This document shows, piece by piece, positions 18,428 to 48,463 of a stretch of 64,000 nt of DNA. A model generated the notes under the pieces. It did not search any database. It was not told where the DNA came from and saw only the letters and a list, made by a program, of their open reading frames with translations. The stretch is from Magallana gigas (taxonomy: Eukaryota): assembly GCF_963853765.1 (NCBI RefSeq), contig NC_088859.1, positions 12,896,001-12,960,000 on the forward strand, written 5' to 3'. The number at the start of each line of letters is the position of its first letter. Position 1 is the first letter of the stretch. A program made the position numbers and the translations under genes.

Positions 18428-20201
18428 TCAAGTGCAAGCGTCCTTAATCAGCTGTGAACTGTTGTATTCCTCTAAGGTGACGACATCATCTGCAAATGAA
18501 AAAAAGAGAAAACTATAAAAAGGAAAAAAAAGAAGAGAAAACTATTAAACATTTCCAGGATTGCATTTATGATGTTTTCTGCAATAATTTGAATGTTCAG
18601 GTCTTAGTTAAACTTTTCATATCTTTGTTAAAATGCATGAACTCAGAGTTAGGTTAAAGAGTAAAACAAATTCAACCTTTCATTGATAGTTTAGTTAAAC
18701 AATTTTAATGGTATCGAATGATATTTTCTTTTTTCAAGGGTAATCATAATTTTGACTTTTTTGTATTTATGTATATGTATATAAAGGAATTTATGTAATC
18801 CAAATACTTATAGTCTTATGTATTATATTTTTACTATGTTACAATTAATTATTTATATTAATATAGTATGAGGATTAAAAGGGTCTTTTTCGGTTTTTAT
18901 AATCATCCCGCTAAGAGCATTTTCAGGCTATTAGCCAGATCCTAAATATATCAAATTTGGCTCGAAATCGGTGTGCTTTGGAAGTTTTGGCAGGTGTTGC
19001 TCTATCACGTTTGGATTTTTAAAAACTACATTCAGAGAGATGGCATTTCAAAACAAACATTTATTACAAAACTTATTAAAAAAATATGGGATTTTTCTCC
19101 TCAATTTCTATAGATAGATCGAATAATTTGCTTTCAATAATAGCACGATGACAATGCAGTTGAGACTCCTATTTTCCACAAATCATTCCCTTCTTGATGA
19201 TTTAACCCTATTTATTATATTTAGAGGATCAAACATATTCGTTTAAGAGACGTAAATATCATAATCATAAAATTATCAGCACGTTTTATATTTATCGCAA
19301 TTTTTTCTAACTCAACAAATAATTACGAGTTATGGTATCAAGCATAATTATAGCTTCTATATGTTTGGTCGAATTATGAAGTTTTGTTGAACTTAAATAG
19401 TGGATAAAAGATATCGAAAGTCTAAATAGTTTATCATGTTTTTATTTGGAACCTGAACATAAAAGTTTTACATTTTAAGAAATGTTCGAGTTACCTTTGT
19501 TGATATCCATTTGTTCAAAAAACTCATCTAAGTCCATGAGCCCAGTAATATCAATCAATATTGACAACTCTGTTTCACTGATGCGCTGATCATCGTCAAG
19601 ATCAAAGGATTGGAATTCACAGACATTCAGTTCGAACATCTATGCAAAAACAAAACCGGAAACTTAGATGTACTCTTAAAATTTGACCTTTTGATTTACC
19701 TGGGCAATCTAGTTTTGTTTAGATAACAGTTATACTTGTCTGCTTATTGCAGTCATACTACAAACCATGGTAAGAAATTTTTGTGACTGTATGCATTTAC
19801 AGAACCATTAAATCAATAAGCGATAATCATACAAAAGTTTGAGTATATCAGGTTTTAATAATATTCTTACTTCATCGTCTGTTGATCTTTTCCCAACCGC
19901 AGCCCCCACGCCTTTTACAGCATCAACTGCAGTACGAACTTGAGCAATAGTTTTTACAGCATTTGCAGCTTCTTTTGGGATTCTTTTAATGACCCTACCC
20001 ACTTTCCTAAAGAATTTCCTTAATCTTCTCCAGGCGTATACATCTTCCGTTAGCAGCAAAAAGGTCAATGAAAAAACCAAAAGGTACCGAAACTGCACCA
20101 AAAAATATGAATCAATCATATGAATACAGCAAACAAAAATTCACAGAAATGAAAGCAAATAAAAATTAACTTTTAAAAAGTCATCAATACTATCTTACCA
20201 T
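18428..20201 (-). CDS. Cationic peptide/EF-hand precursor gene 1 (putative antimicrobial peptide), 143 aa
   Basis: Exons 20199-20201 (ATG|GT), 19871-20092, 19495-19639, 18428-18489, all GT-AG and in frame. Protein: MFRYLLVFSLTFLLLTEDVYA / WRRLRKFFRKVGRVIKRIPKEAANAVKTIAQVRTAVDAVKGVGAAV / GKR / STDDEMFELNVCEFQSFDLDDDQRISETELSILIDITGLMDLDEFFEQMDINKDDVVTLEEYNSSQLIKDACT. Confidence 0.9.
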
Positions 20202-20267
20202 ATTAAGCAATGTCTACAAGGTACGTCGCAAGTAATAACTTGTCTACCAAAACAACAGACGAACTTC

Positions 20268-20325
20268 TTTTATACACACACACACCCTTGAAACTTTTGG
20301 ATTTTACTTTTAATTTTCTGGAAAC
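20268..20325 (-). promoter_or_regulatory. TATA box and conserved upstream element of peptide gene 1
   Basis: TATAAAA (minus) at 20268-20274, 67 nt before the ATG. A diverged copy of the element shared by the four paralogs lies at 20299-20325. Confidence 0.6.
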
Positions 20326-44859: not shown

Positions 44860-46070
44860 AGTCGCACCTACAACAGTCCTGTTTTCTCCGTCCATATGTT
44901 AGACTTTACAATGAAAATCTCCCTAACAAGAGAACGTACACAAACATTCCAACAGAGCATAAAGATAGGAAATCTTATTAGCTAAATAGATTATAGATTA
45001 ACAATCATTAAAAAAAAATTAAGGGAAAGCTGATGGTAGCTTTATAGACCGTTTAGCCTCCTTAAAGCTGAATACTACTTGTAAAAGGCATTGTCCGCCA
45101 TATTTCTCTTTTATCGCCGCTATCTCTACAACTCATTTGAAAGCTTCCTCATTTTCCCACTTGGATGCATATCATTGCACACATTGCACACAAGTACTCT
45201 GAAGTTGGCATTAAAAACATGCTTAAATGTTTTTAAAACAGTTTTTGGAGACCAGGTCTTCCAACAATCAGACGGAATTCTCATGGGTACAAATTGTGCT
45301 CCTCTATTGGCTGACTTATTTCTATATTCTTTTGAAGCAGAATTCATTCAAAAGCTTGTTCAAGAAAAAAATAGAGCTCTTGCTGTGGCTTCAACTCCAC
45401 ATTTAGATATATTGATGATGTGTTTTCCATTAACAATTGTTACTTTCACTCTTATGTTAACTCAACATATCCAAGTGAGTTTGAAATAAAACATTCAACA
45501 AATTCCGAAACATCTGATTTCATATTTGGATATTTTACTAGAAAAAGACATTAATGGCAACATAACAACAATTAAAAACTATATGATAAACGTGGTGATT
45601 TAATTTTTTCCATCGTCAACTTCCCTTTCCTATGTAGCAATACACCAACATCACCTGGTTCTGGGGTTTATGTCTCTCAGCTTATTCGTAATGCAAGAGC
45701 AAGCTCTATATGCGAACAATTTATTAAACGAGGCATGCTACTCGATTAAAATCATCTTTACGCGAGTTTTATGGTCGATACAATGACCTTATCGACAAGT
45801 ACAATGTTTCATTAGGACAAATGTTGAATGACGTTTTTCATACTTGTTATACCATTATTTATACACCGGACTGACTATGGTTTCTTCCATTTTTCATGAT
45901 CTTGACAATGAGCACACGGCGGGTGCGACCGGTCGGCAGGGGATGGTCACTCTTCCTAGACACCTAATCCCACTTCTATCATTTTAGAGATCCGTGTTGC
46001 TCTGCTTTAATTCGTATTTCGCTTTACAGATTTCTGAGATGGTTGACAGTTTGTTACTGTCAGTTTTCAT
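44860..46070 (+). mobile_element. Degenerate Penelope-like RT remnant with conserved 3' tail
   Basis: VFQQSDGILMGTNCAPLLADLFLYSFEAEF, then FRYIDDVFSINN in a shifted frame. The tail GGTCGGCAGGGGATG...CACCTAATCCCAC recurs in reverse at about 57025-57150 and 63230-63420. Confidence 0.75.
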
Positions 46071-47669
46071 TCATTCATATAATACATACCAGAAATTCAA
46101 GTAAAACAGTCAAAATACTGTAAAAAAGCAAATGAAGTAACAAACTGCAACATATAATATGTAGAGCAAAATATTGTACAAGGTACACTTTAGTAAATCA
46201 TTTATAATACAAACTGAATAAGCTGCAGATCCCTTGATAGCTGAAAGTATTTTGCTAAAGATGTCTCGCCAATGTGGACTTACATGTCTCAATGTAGGCC
46301 ACTCGGTCGCGATAAAATTTTTCCATTTTTACAAACTACAAACTTTTTCTAAGCCAGGAAAATACTAACATCAGCAATATAGGTTAACACATTATTTACA
46401 AACAGAAAATGCACATAAAACAAGAATTAATCACTAACATTATGACCACGAGAGGAATACTTCGCGTCGGCCACGAGTTACAGGTATGCAAACGGGTGTA
46501 ACGAAACTGAAGGATTTATGTATCTGTGTGACGGTGCCTATTAAAAATGGTGTCTAGCTTGAACATTTCTAAATCTAAATGGATCTTGTTTTAAAATCAT
46601 TTTATTTTAAAATGTTTTAATAAAATGTAAGAATGCGCTTAATTTTAATGTTTATTTCTTTTTCTTCATATCAAACTATGTCAAGATTAGTCTATTTATT
46701 TTATCTTTAAGTATTTTTTATAAAGTTTTTAAGGTTCCTATAAAGAGAAAAGGCAGATTGTCATTCACCATGCATGGTTATATACAATGACCCTTAGTTT
46801 TTTTTAACATTCGGCCTATGTATCTCCGCTATTTTTTCAAAGGTGCTATGCATGATAGTTCAGAGGTATTCAGAAAAAAGTTGTGAAGAATAAAATTGCT
46901 TCCATTTTCTTTTATTGCAACTAAAATATTTTTTCGATTTCATTCACGGACACCGACGATTTTGCTGTTATTATGATATGCATGATCTCATCTTGTACTC
47001 AAGCTTGTGTTTTGAAAGGTGTGTGTGTTTTAAAAAAAAGAATTTAGCTCTTATGTTTCTACAAAGTGGAGAAATTTTTAATCACCCTCTTCACATATAT
47101 CACAGAAACGAGGTCGGGATGTCTCTACAATGAGAATCTTAGACCCCAATTCTCATTGACAGTTGAACATGTAATCAGGAAGAAAACATTATGAACAGGA
47201 ACAGTGACATCATTTTGCTCTGTTACACATGATAAAAATAAAAGTATATTCCCTTCAACGTTCTTCAAAAATTCGTTACATTTTTAAAGCAGTTTTTTTA
47301 TCAGGTTATATCGTGATTTCTAGGGCTAAAAAAATTACACAAAACCATAATTCAATAGGAATAAGAGTCTATATTTTTTTAGATTTATTATGAAAGCATG
47401 TAGAGTGAATATTTTAACAATTGTCGTATACCGTAAACACATGGCATCAGGGAAAATCCACAGTTGACTGACGGATGAAAAGAGTTGACATGTTTAAATA
47501 AAATATGATTTGAAAAAAACCAACGAGAGGTTTTATTTCGGTAGGAATCTTGTCCAAAAAAATTAAAATGCAGTTATATACAGAAGTTTAATCATAAGAA
47601 ACAAATTACAGTTAGAAAAATAGTAAAAATAAAAAAAATTACTACAGAGTGAAAAACCGTGTCAAATAA

Positions 47670-48463
47670 TCAGCTGCACGCTTCCTTAATAATCTGGGAA
47701 CTGTTGTATTCTTCTATAGTGACGACATCATCTGCATAAAAAATTAGAGACAAATGTATCGATATAATTCTTTTTTCATTCATCTTTATTTGTAAGTGAA
47801 GTGTCCGCTTTACCTTTGTTGACATCCAGTTTTTCAAAGAACTCATCCAAATCTACAAATCCAGTAATATCAATCAGTGTTGACAATTCTGTTTCACTGA
47901 TGCGCTGATCATCGTCCAGATCGAATGAGCGGAAATCACAAACATTCAAACTTAATACCTGTTGATAAAAAAGTAATAACAACAAAATGTTATTATTTTT
48001 GATTTTATATTGGTGTAAACTTGAATTACGATTTTTTTTTTATCTATAATTTATTATCAATATGATGCACAATGTGATTAATGCATTGATGATCAATATG
48101 ACTGATTTTAGTTATCGTTCCTGAGACAAACGTTTTGGTAATTTATTTTATATATCAGATATCTTATACAATAAAATCACGAAAAAAATCATTACCTGGT
48201 CATTCGTTGATCTTTTTCCTAACACCGTTGCTGCGACTTTCACTACAGTATGAATAGTATGGGCAGTTTTAATAACCTTTGCAGCTTTTCTTAAAAACTT
48301 TTTGATTCTTCTCCAGGCGTGAACATCTTCCGTTAGCAGTAAAATGGCCAATGAAAAAACCAAGAAGTACCGAAACTGCACATTCAAAAAAAAAATTTAT
48401 TATGAATTTTAGCTTAAAAAATGGACATACATTTTTTTTATAAATACTACAACATATTACCAT
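47670..48463 (-). CDS. Cationic peptide/EF-hand precursor gene 4, 129 aa
   Basis: Exons 48461-48463, 48196-48375, 47814-47958, 47670-47731. Protein: MFRYFLVFSLAILLLTEDVHA / WRRIKKFLRKAAKVIKTAHTIHTVVKVAATVL / GKR / STNDQVLSLNVCDFRSFDLDDDQRISETELSTLIDITGFVDLDEFFEKLDVNKDDVVTIEEYNSSQIIKEACS. Confidence 0.92.

Follow-up and report, generated by a model that had tools for sequence, protein, structure and literature searches.

A cluster of four Magallana gigas genes for candidate amidated cationic peptides joined to an EF-hand domain

The sole studied homologue of the genes analyzed here is EFCBP of Pinctada fucata, which was reportedly introduced by Huang et al. in 2007 (BBA 1770:1037) as a shell-formation protein of the extracellular EF-hand type. 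A further source reports that EFCBP, extracellular and with EF-hands, is up-regulated immediately after the shell is damaged (PMC3120837). Mytimycin, a bivalve antimicrobial peptide (AMP), already offers an example of a precursor with an EF-hand extension (PMC8004829). The linear peptides cecropin, stomoxyn and pleurocidin are Cys-free and 30-46 aa long, with a Trp-containing, basic amphipathic helix at the N-terminus. Among gastropods, the Helix HCS2/pleurin gene combines putative neuropeptides with an EF-hand motif region, according to a reference cited in PMC8398477. The oyster AMPs in a 2025 review are defensins, the Pro-rich Cg-Prp, molluscidin and the Crassostrea hongkongensis helical peptide URP20 (PMC11767717), and our literature search for Crassostrea turned up no dedicated family of linear, helical, amidated peptides encoded in the genome.

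The window, a 64,000-nt stretch of Magallana (Crassostrea) gigas chromosome DNA (NC_088859.1, 12,896,001 to 12,960,000), contains four intact minus-strand genes of common structure, which extend from the stop of gene 1 at 18428 to the ATG of gene 4 (Table 1). In all four splice models an exon 1 ending in ATG is followed by a second exon of variable length and by third and fourth coding exons of constant length, and every intron is GT-AG. Each precursor consists of a signal peptide, a Cys-free peptide, Gly-Lys-Arg and a 73-aa anionic domain. The spliced product of gene 2 is residue-for-residue equal to RefSeq XP_011438522.3 (P0002), an "uncharacterized protein", and RefSeq models under this name already exist for these genes. 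The C. angulata orthologues of genes 1 and 4 are P0134 (143 aa) and P0009, respectively.

Table 1. Positions of the four genes, their exons and a conserved upstream block within the window
Feature	Position	Strand	Remarks
Gene 1	18428..20229	-	143 aa; splice model, GT-AG
Gene 1 exon 1	at least 20229-20199	-	ends in ATG, 20201-20199
Gene 1 exon 2	20092-19871	-	222 nt; signal, 46-aa peptide, GKR
Gene 1 exon 3	19639-19495	-	145 nt; EF-hand 1
Gene 1 exon 4 CDS	18489-18428	-	62 nt; EF-hand 2 loop and stop
Gene 2	26798..28602	-	131 aa; splice model
Gene 2 exon 1	at least 28602-28582	-	ATG 28584-28582
Gene 2 exon 2	28480-28295	-	186 nt
Gene 2 exon 3	27120-26976	-	145 nt
Gene 2 exon 4 CDS	26859-26798	-	62 nt
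Conserved block GAAAATGAAATGAAAAG	28671..28687	-	upstream of gene 2; promoter alignment
Gene 3	42850..43811	-	131 aa; splice model; 3'UTR to at least 42850
Gene 3 ATG	43811-43809	-	
Gene 3 exon 2	43712-43527	-	186 nt
Gene 3 exon 3	43275-43131	-	145 nt
Gene 3 exon 4 CDS	43003-42942	-	62 nt
Gene 4	47404..48554	-	129 aa; splice model; 3'UTR to about 47404
Gene 4 exon 1	48554-48461	-	ATG 48463-48461
Gene 4 exon 2	48375-48196	-	180 nt
Gene 4 exon 3	47958-47814	-	145 nt
Gene 4 exon 4 CDS	47731-47670	-	62 nt

All four genes appear to be transcribed, since the predicted exon junctions recur in contigs from public RNA runs. For gene 1, a contig end from run X1 maps to 20200-20229 and is joined to exon 2; for exon 1 of gene 2, contig ends from runs X9 and X17 map to 28583-28602. 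The gene 3 joint between 43003 and 43131 is present in contigs of X1, X2 and X9, and that between 43275 and 43527 in contigs of X1, X2, X9 and X17. All four exons of gene 4 are spanned by one 609-nt X2 contig, and the joints of this gene in RNA contigs are 47731 to 47814, 47955(+3) to 48193(+3), and 48375 to 48461. Word depth, in itself a poor measure, was very high for exon 2 in an oyster metatranscriptome. The GT-AG splice models and the RNA-contig junctions thus bear out the original prediction of four intact paralogs with identical exon phases, and the cluster is not a chance pattern, given the identity of the gene 2 product with a RefSeq protein and the match between RNA contigs and predicted junctions. 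In the promoter alignment, the block GAAAATGAAATGAAAAG upstream of gene 2 recurs identically upstream of gene 3 at 43886-43902 and is degenerate in genes 1 and 4, and a conserved TATAAAAG box lies about 30 nt downstream of it. From the GAAANNGAAA consensus we infer a likeness of the block to an IRF/ISRE site.

The peptides between signal and Gly-Lys-Arg have 46, 34, 34 and 32 aa in genes 1-4, all without Cys, and net charges of +11, +10, +10 and +9. These values are the ones predicted originally, with the proviso that the peptides of genes 2 and 3 have 33 aa if the signal is cut after Gly-Gly, leaving the family-wide N-terminal Trp. The predicted processing site was likewise found in all four spliced products of the cluster, as GKRS, and the proposed cecropin-like design was recovered as an amphipathic basic N-terminal half and an Ala/Val/Thr-rich C-terminal half. 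The hydrophobic moment of the best 18-mer ranges from 0.84 to 1.07 in the four peptides, while the whole-peptide moment lies above 96-99.8% of shuffles and is reached by 0.25-4.4% of them. AlphaFold2 models residues 24-55 as a single helix at low pLDDT and predicts linker residues 56-62 to be unstructured (pLDDT below 50). The peptides therefore combine the positive charge, helical amphipathicity and lack of Cys of cationic amphipathic alpha-helical AMPs with the sequence signal of the amidation pathway (PC, carboxypeptidase, PAM), namely Gly and then a dibasic site at the peptide C-terminus. The cationic helical peptide is probably amidated, and the computed monoisotopic masses of the predicted amidated forms are 5128.08 Da for gene 1, 3719.27 or 3776.29 Da for gene 2, 3677.22 or 3734.24 Da for gene 3 and 3681.30 Da for gene 4.

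Like cecropin, stomoxyn and pleurocidin, the oyster peptides are more hydrophobic and Ala/Val-rich in their C-terminal half and end in an extra Gly that would allow amidation, and that of gene 1 also has a hinge Pro. The precursors of those peptides carry short acidic pro-pieces, whereas the oyster precursors carry a folded EF-hand domain, and the oyster peptides fall outside all three sequence families. None of the four products matched a Pfam AMP model at the gathering score; the sole AMP-family match was to stomoxyn (PF11585) in gene 1 exon 2, with E 0.39 and 11.1 bits against a cut-off of 25. The mismatch to known bivalve AMP families claimed earlier was thereby upheld and extends to the Pfam AMP models. 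An ESM Atlas feature search with the signal-plus-peptide part gave no usable match. URP20, a helical AMP from C. hongkongensis plasma, was rejected as a relative because its residue set (K, M, L, I, A, D) and net charge of +3 do not fit and its supplement contains no family motifs.

The 73-aa C-terminal domain is a canonical EF-hand pair between two conserved Cys, matched by PF13499, PF00036 and PF10591 and modeled by AlphaFold2 with pLDDT 84-91 over the pair. Its net charge of -14 to -19 offsets that of the peptide. The PF10591 (SPARC_Ca_bdg) match is marginal: P0002 scores 26.3 bits, above the cut-off of 22, and P0006 and P0009 score 21.5-21.7, below it. Pfam search of the products found no other SPARC/BM-40 module (follistatin-like, Kazal), and membership in that group was rejected, as PF10591 alone matched and no such modules precede it. 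In a Foldseek search of the AlphaFold2 model against the PDB, every match was a generic EF-hand pair (KChIP, NCS-1, calmodulin) and none had an E of 0.01 or lower. A complex prediction of peptide with pro-domain scored 0.00 in a run without controls, which counts neither for nor against an interaction. The EF-hand pro-domain of the original prediction is thus confirmed as an EF-hand pair by Pfam, but is probably more than a passive pro-domain, since its Ca-ligand residues and two Cys are conserved family-wide; judged by these invariant positions, it may even be the main product.

Mytimycin precursors resemble those of the oyster: the signal peptide and the cationic mature peptide are followed by a dibasic site and, C-terminally, by an anionic extension with an EF-hand pair (PMC8004829). 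In contrast, the mature mytimycin is a 12-Cys antifungal knot and the oyster peptides are linear, so that membership by the 12 conserved cysteines was rejected for peptides without any Cys, and the mytimycin extension lacks the two flanking Cys of the oyster domain. With mytimycin sequences taken from the supplement of PMC8004829, hhalign aligned the two extensions at 95% probability (E 3.1e-8, 26% identity, 54 columns), a level equally attained by calmodulin-type and PDB EF-hand proteins. No mytimycin-like protein occurred among the HMMER matches examined. Common descent with mytimycin is therefore unproven, the similarity being no better than to calmodulin-type EF-hands.

EFCBP (P0079 = ABF48089 / A5H002) is a full-length homologue of the oyster genes, found by hmmsearch with E 3.5e-5 over positions 3-123 using the oyster profile and E 2.2e-27 using a wider one. 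It shares with them a signal ending in ..DA before WRRRR, a basic Cys-free segment, GKR and an EF-hand pair between two Cys, although identity is only about 30% and its Arg/Trp/Tyr-rich peptide lacks the Ala/Val/Thr tail. By full-length similarity and shared architecture, the oyster genes belong with the EFCBP-type precursors of Ostreida and Arcida, in which a signal peptide is followed by a W-R-R basic segment, a dibasic site (mostly G-K-R) and two canonical EF-hand loops between Cys. The family is not wholly undescribed, because its relative EFCBP was published in 2007. The homology and HMM searches thus left the claim of a possibly undescribed family standing in part: known AMP families were not matched and no paper with the peptide strings was found, but RefSeq models exist and a described protein matches at full length. 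EFCBP has been presented as a shell-formation protein and, as far as the sources consulted say, its basic segment was not regarded as a released peptide. Full-text literature searches with the peptide strings, LOC105336047 and XP_011438521 found nothing, and we found no paper that treats the cationic peptide as a product; PmAMP-1 of P. fucata martensii (He et al. 2019) is possibly an earlier Pinctada AMP description.

In the M. gigas genome the family has expanded, with tandem copies, to at least 6 linear members and at least 4 that contain Cys. Immediately past the end of the window there is a fifth paralogue; the sixth is 2.7 Mb distant, and the Cys-containing branch is on another chromosome. 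Relatives occur in Crassostrea, Saccostrea, Ostrea, Pinctada and Tegillarca, and oysters, pearl oysters and ark clams share the N-terminal W-R-R motif. All 13 members of an alignment have C70, D76, D80, F104, D108, D112, E119 and C130 in common, and conservation is 90% or more at R25, K57, R58 and E87. The Gly-extended dibasic site is retained in most relatives (G-[KR]-R in 9 of the 13), while the peptides of some are weakly cationic or anionic (net +4 and -2). The larval-shell EF-hand protein CGI_10012241 and the pediveliger-specific CGI_10025191 may also be family members. Pairwise dN/dS in the peptide region is 0.12-0.19 for older pairs, which indicates that the peptide is not a spacer but a coding product under constraint; the EF-hand part is under similar constraint. 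With values below 0.2 for these pairs, positive selection on the mature peptide was rejected.

Taken together, the sequences make these genes a credible candidate for a linear host-defence peptide family. We somewhat favor a reading as secreted bipartite precursors, in which the peptide would be a membrane-active host-defence molecule of cecropin/stomoxyn design and the EF-hand domain would neutralize or chaperone it. After removal of the signal peptide, a prohormone-convertase-type cut at Gly-Lys-Arg would yield two products. The first would be a strongly cationic, Cys-free peptide of 32-46 aa starting with Trp-Arg-Arg, predicted to be helical and amphipathic in its N-terminal half, whose exposed Gly would be converted to a C-terminal amide; it is most likely membrane-active, either antimicrobial or cytolytic. 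The second would be the acidic 73-aa EF-hand pair with one Cys on either side, which most likely neutralizes or chaperones the peptide during synthesis and probably has a separate extracellular function that depends on Ca2+. The antimicrobial reading is consistent with the peptide design, purifying selection and multigene organization, and the rise of EFCBP after shell damage is also compatible with a wound or defence response. Counting against it are the lack of AMP HMM matches, the weakly cationic or anionic peptides of some relatives, the invariant Ca ligands and Cys that point to the EF-hand domain as a possible main product, and the reading of the sole studied homologue as a shell-formation protein.

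This last point leads to the best-surviving alternative, to which we give a clearly smaller but appreciable chance: the products would bind calcium outside the cell and serve to form or repair the shell, with a functional EF-hand pair and a basic segment that binds acidic matrix, chitin or mineral, or serves for targeting or as a pro-segment, and is not antimicrobial. It draws on the full-length homology to EFCBP and its rise after damage (PMC3120837), on the Ca-ligand positions and two Cys invariant across the 13 members, and on the SPARC_Ca_bdg score of P0002. However, up-regulation on shell damage suits a wound response equally well, and a shell role leaves unexplained why Gly-Lys-Arg, the signal for processing and amidation, is conserved, why an amphipathic helix of charge +10 is under strict purifying selection, and why the genes have expanded in tandem with divergent peptides, as is typical of defence effectors. 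The shell and defence roles are not mutually exclusive.

Precursors of amidated signaling peptides, hormone- or neuropeptide-like, are improbable. The GKR site, a length of 32-46 aa within the range of amidated hormones and the pleurin/HCS2 precedent agree with such a role; by description, pleurin/HCS2 is likewise a secreted molluscan precursor in which an EF-hand motif region accompanies amidated peptides (PMC8398477). Yet it yields several short PRXamide neuropeptides, whereas the oyster precursor has one long cationic helix without a PRXamide motif, and the net charge of +9 to +14 and the Ala/Val-rich tail are atypical of receptor ligands. The many divergent tandem paralogues, the very high word depth in a non-neural metatranscriptome and the absence of such a precursor from the C. 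gigas neuropeptide survey consulted also speak against it. Slightly less probable still is an uncleaved secreted protein whose basic helix folds onto the Ca2+-loaded cleft of its own EF-hands or competes for it, for instance as a Ca2+-switched adhesive or membrane-binding protein, for although binding of basic amphipathic helices by EF-hand pairs is exemplified by the solved complex of calmodulin with melittin, and both parts are similarly constrained, the Gly-preceded dibasic site is conserved within the linker predicted to be unstructured.

The host-defence reading can be widened, by analogy and with a good deal of doubt, to a pteriomorph-wide set of effectors in which a W-R-R cationic module, linear and amidated or Cys-stapled, would always be fused to a disulfide-bracketed EF-hand pair acting as a Ca2+-dependent intramolecular chaperone or silencer of the lytic helix, much as calmodulin holds melittin. 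If so, the domain would be a new kind of AMP pro-domain and EFCBP a wound-induced defence precursor.

The cluster would belong to a transcribed multigene family of linear helical amidated peptides, conserved over oysters, pearl oysters and ark clams, and would yield peptides of 32-46 aa ready for use as leads. A lytic-type helix paired with a conserved domain for Ca2+ binding provides a directly testable model for self-protection of the producing cell, and the meaning of EFCBP, routinely listed as a biomineralization gene, could be revised. Should the peptides turn out to be active, they would be additional effectors of interest for Vibrio and OsHV-1 disease in a major aquaculture species.

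Reading of the minus strand and scripted exon assembly yielded four paralogues with one exon layout, as the original prediction had it, and their introns are GT..AG without exception in a window of ~30% G+C. The spliced product of gene 2 is identical to RefSeq XP_011438522.3, named "uncharacterized protein [Magallana gigas]". All four products comprise (i) a hydrophobic leader of 21 residues (MFRYFL.FSL..LLLTEDV..), (ii) a peptide without Cys that starts with (G)WRR, (iii) Gly-Lys-Arg, and (iv) a 73-aa segment with a net charge of -14 to -19. Recomputed peptide lengths (46, 34, 34 and 32 aa for genes 1-4) and net charges (+11, +10, +10 and +9) agree with those first proposed; however, a leader cut after Gly-Gly would shorten the peptides of genes 2 and 3 to 33 aa and leave an N-terminal Trp, as in all relatives. 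The predicted EF-hand domain behind the GKR site was likewise recovered as an EF-hand pair by Pfam (PF13499, PF00036), with an additional match of gene 2 to PF10591 SPARC_Ca_bdg at 26.3 bits, and by eye both loops, DLDDDQRISETE and DVNKDDVVTIEE, are canonical 12-residue loops. Runs of N (gaps or masked sequence) at 16158-16289, 49119-49263 and 56772-56940 overlap none of the four genes.

Coordinates of family members and associated features. Positions are those of the window unless a contig is given (G000:C7, the window's own contig, on which the window occupies 12896001-12960000; G000:C3, another chromosome of the same genome; L-numbers, fetched genome stretches).
Feature	Strand	Position	Description
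Gene 1	minus	ATG (exon 1 end) 20201-20199; exon 2 20092-19871 (222 nt); exon 3 19639-19495 (145 nt); exon 4 CDS 18489-18428 (62 nt)	143 aa
Gene 2	minus	ATG (exon 1 end) 28584-28582; exon 2 28480-28295 (186 nt); exon 3 27120-26976 (145 nt); exon 4 CDS 26859-26798 (62 nt)	131 aa
Gene 3	minus	ATG (exon 1 end) 43811-43809; exon 2 43712-43527 (186 nt); exon 3 43275-43131 (145 nt); exon 4 CDS 43003-42942 (62 nt)	131 aa
Gene 4	minus	ATG (exon 1 end) 48463-48461; exon 2 48375-48196 (180 nt); exon 3 47958-47814 (145 nt); exon 4 CDS 47731-47670 (62 nt)	129 aa
Fifth paralogue	minus	G000:C7:12961500-12963000 (L008 1495-2432)	1.5-3 kb beyond window end
Sixth paralogue (P0019)		G000:C7:15623900-15624720 (L010/L011)	160 aa; 2.7 Mb off
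Cys-containing branch (P0136-like)		G000:C3:3.73-4.15 Mb (L018-L023)	at least 4 copies
Promoter block GAAAATGAAATGAAAAG	minus	28671-28687; 43886-43902	degenerate at ~20303-20319 and ~48553-48570
RT-like fragments		30836-32376	
Penelope-like retroelement ORF	minus	34389-36572	727 aa, RVT_1 + GIY-YIG; between genes 2 and 3
Penelope-like element, inverted partial copy of 3' part	plus	36961-37906	between genes 2 and 3
hAT-type ORF	minus	39613-40788	391 aa; hAT-family C-terminal dimerisation domain (PF05699, E 7.6e-20)

Contigs from four public sequencing runs, of which X9 and X17 are recorded as RNA libraries, were placed on window positions 42700-48600. They carry the joints of gene 3 (43003|43131 and 43275|43527) and of gene 4 (47731|47814, 47958|48196 and 48375|48461), and a single 609-nt contig covers all four exons of gene 4. 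Beyond this interval, contig ends adjoining paralogous exon-2 starts match exon 1 of gene 2 (28583-28602, runs X9 and X17) and of gene 1 (20200-20229, run X1) exactly. These joints and exon 1 ends confirm the unusual placement of the start codon at the end of exon 1 and suggest that each of the four genes is transcribed. For genes 2 and 3, exon 2 has very high word depth in an oyster metatranscriptome, although contig-derived depth is a poor measure. Other contigs join 47957 in gene 4 exon 3 to 43527 in gene 3 exon 2 (X1 and X17) or 47948 to 48307, that is, exon 3 to mid exon 2 (RNA runs); both joints are most likely assembly chimeras of near-identical paralogues or alleles.

Relatives were collected by searches of the oyster's own genome and by exhaustive HMMER and profile searches of protein collections. 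The cluster is completed just past the window end by a fifth, longer paralogue. One of its exons encodes the leader plus WRRARKFFRNVG..., an additional one encodes peptide sequence that ends in ..LLGKRST, and another encodes the EF-hand; the product is similar to P0021 of Saccostrea echinata (180 aa). In the sixth paralogue the peptide, of 43 aa, is rich in Arg (net +14), and the acidic tail is longer. HMMER and profile searches found full-length relatives in the oysters Crassostrea angulata, S. echinata, S. cucullata and Ostrea edulis, all named "uncharacterized" save one S. echinata entry with an automatic EF-hand name, and pearl-oyster relatives in Pinctada imbricata and Pinctada fucata. 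A Cys-containing branch (P0135 of the ark clam Tegillarca granosa, P0136 of M. gigas) has the WRRRR start followed by a Cys-rich stretch; its M. gigas copies on the other chromosome have ~8-10 Cys in the peptide and keep both the WRRRR start and the EF-hand pair. Across an alignment of 13 members, the Arg pair directly after the leader (R25, R26), the K-R site, the two Cys flanking the EF-hand pair and the Ca-ligand positions (D76, D80, E87, D108, D112, E119) are invariant or nearly so, and Trp stands beside the Arg pair in 11. Peptides range from 32 to 78 aa and from -2 to +14 in net charge (scripted, eleven members), and Gly usually precedes the dibasic site.

Both peptide and pro-domain are constrained, since pairwise Nei-Gojobori dN/dS in the older pairs is 0.12-0.19 and 0.12-0.27, respectively; these estimates gave no hint of diversifying selection. 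The leader has far lower synonymous divergence (0.25-0.37) than the peptide (>1.2), a conserved-signal, divergent-peptide pattern that is frequent among effector families. Exon 2 is near-identical between genes 2 and 3, with zero synonymous differences in the peptide region versus a dS of 0.25 in the pro-domain (exons 3-4), which suggests gene conversion confined to the peptide exon. In all four genes the promoter block precedes a conserved TATAAAAG box by ~30 nt and, judged by its sequence, may correspond to an IRF/ISRE-type GAAANNGAAA element. The hAT-type ORF is a transposase remnant within the cluster.

AlphaFold2, run with the family alignment, predicted residues 24-55 as a single helix at low confidence (pLDDT 45-52); the EF-hand pair reached pLDDT 84-91, and the linker around GKR came out disordered. 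Hydrophobic moments of the N-terminal 18-mers are 0.84-1.07, and whole-peptide moments exceed those of 96-99.8% of shuffles. Gene 1 has a mid-peptide Pro, which resembles the cecropin hinge.

The most economical reading, plausible but unproven, is a bipartite secreted precursor whose cut at GKR would release an amphipathic helix, cationic and amidated, that would serve in host defence and, as a second product, an acidic Ca2+-binding EF-hand fragment. The observation behind the original prediction is confirmed, and its antimicrobial interpretation is plausible but unproven. A serious rival is shell formation: protein P0079 among the relatives is EFCBP of P. fucata (ABF48089), published as an extracellular EF-hand protein of shell formation that is reported to rise after shell damage (PMC3120837) and counted among biomineralisation genes by later papers (PMC6434816). 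The two readings are not mutually exclusive. A hormone-like role of the peptide is less likely, as its charge and the divergent tandem copies speak against it.

Full-text literature searches with the peptide strings and locus names found no paper. For oysters, a review of aquatic invertebrate AMPs gives defensins, Cg-Prp, molluscidin and URP20 and none that resembles the WRR-peptide/EF-hand family (PMC11767717). URP20, considered as a member, was rejected as unrelated. Mussel mytimycins also have an EF-hand extension behind a dibasic site, but the mature peptide that they yield has 12 Cys (PMC8004829). Flanking Cys are absent from their extension, which resembles the oyster family no more closely than calmodulin-type EF-hands do, and no mytimycin was among the HMMER matches listed. 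The gastropod gene pleurin/HCS2 likewise encodes a peptide precursor that includes an EF-hand motif. The oyster members are unannotated, and one relative, EFCBP, is in the literature under a different interpretation, so the family suggested as possibly undescribed is not wholly so.

In the host-defence reading, the strictly conserved EF-hand ligands speak for a C-terminal fragment that is more than a charge-balancing spacer. Melittin and other basic amphipathic peptides are known to be bound by EF-hand pairs, so by analogy the fragment may bind its own helix in cis. A further possible role, in extracellular calcium handling, would, if true, reconcile the EFCBP shell-repair data.
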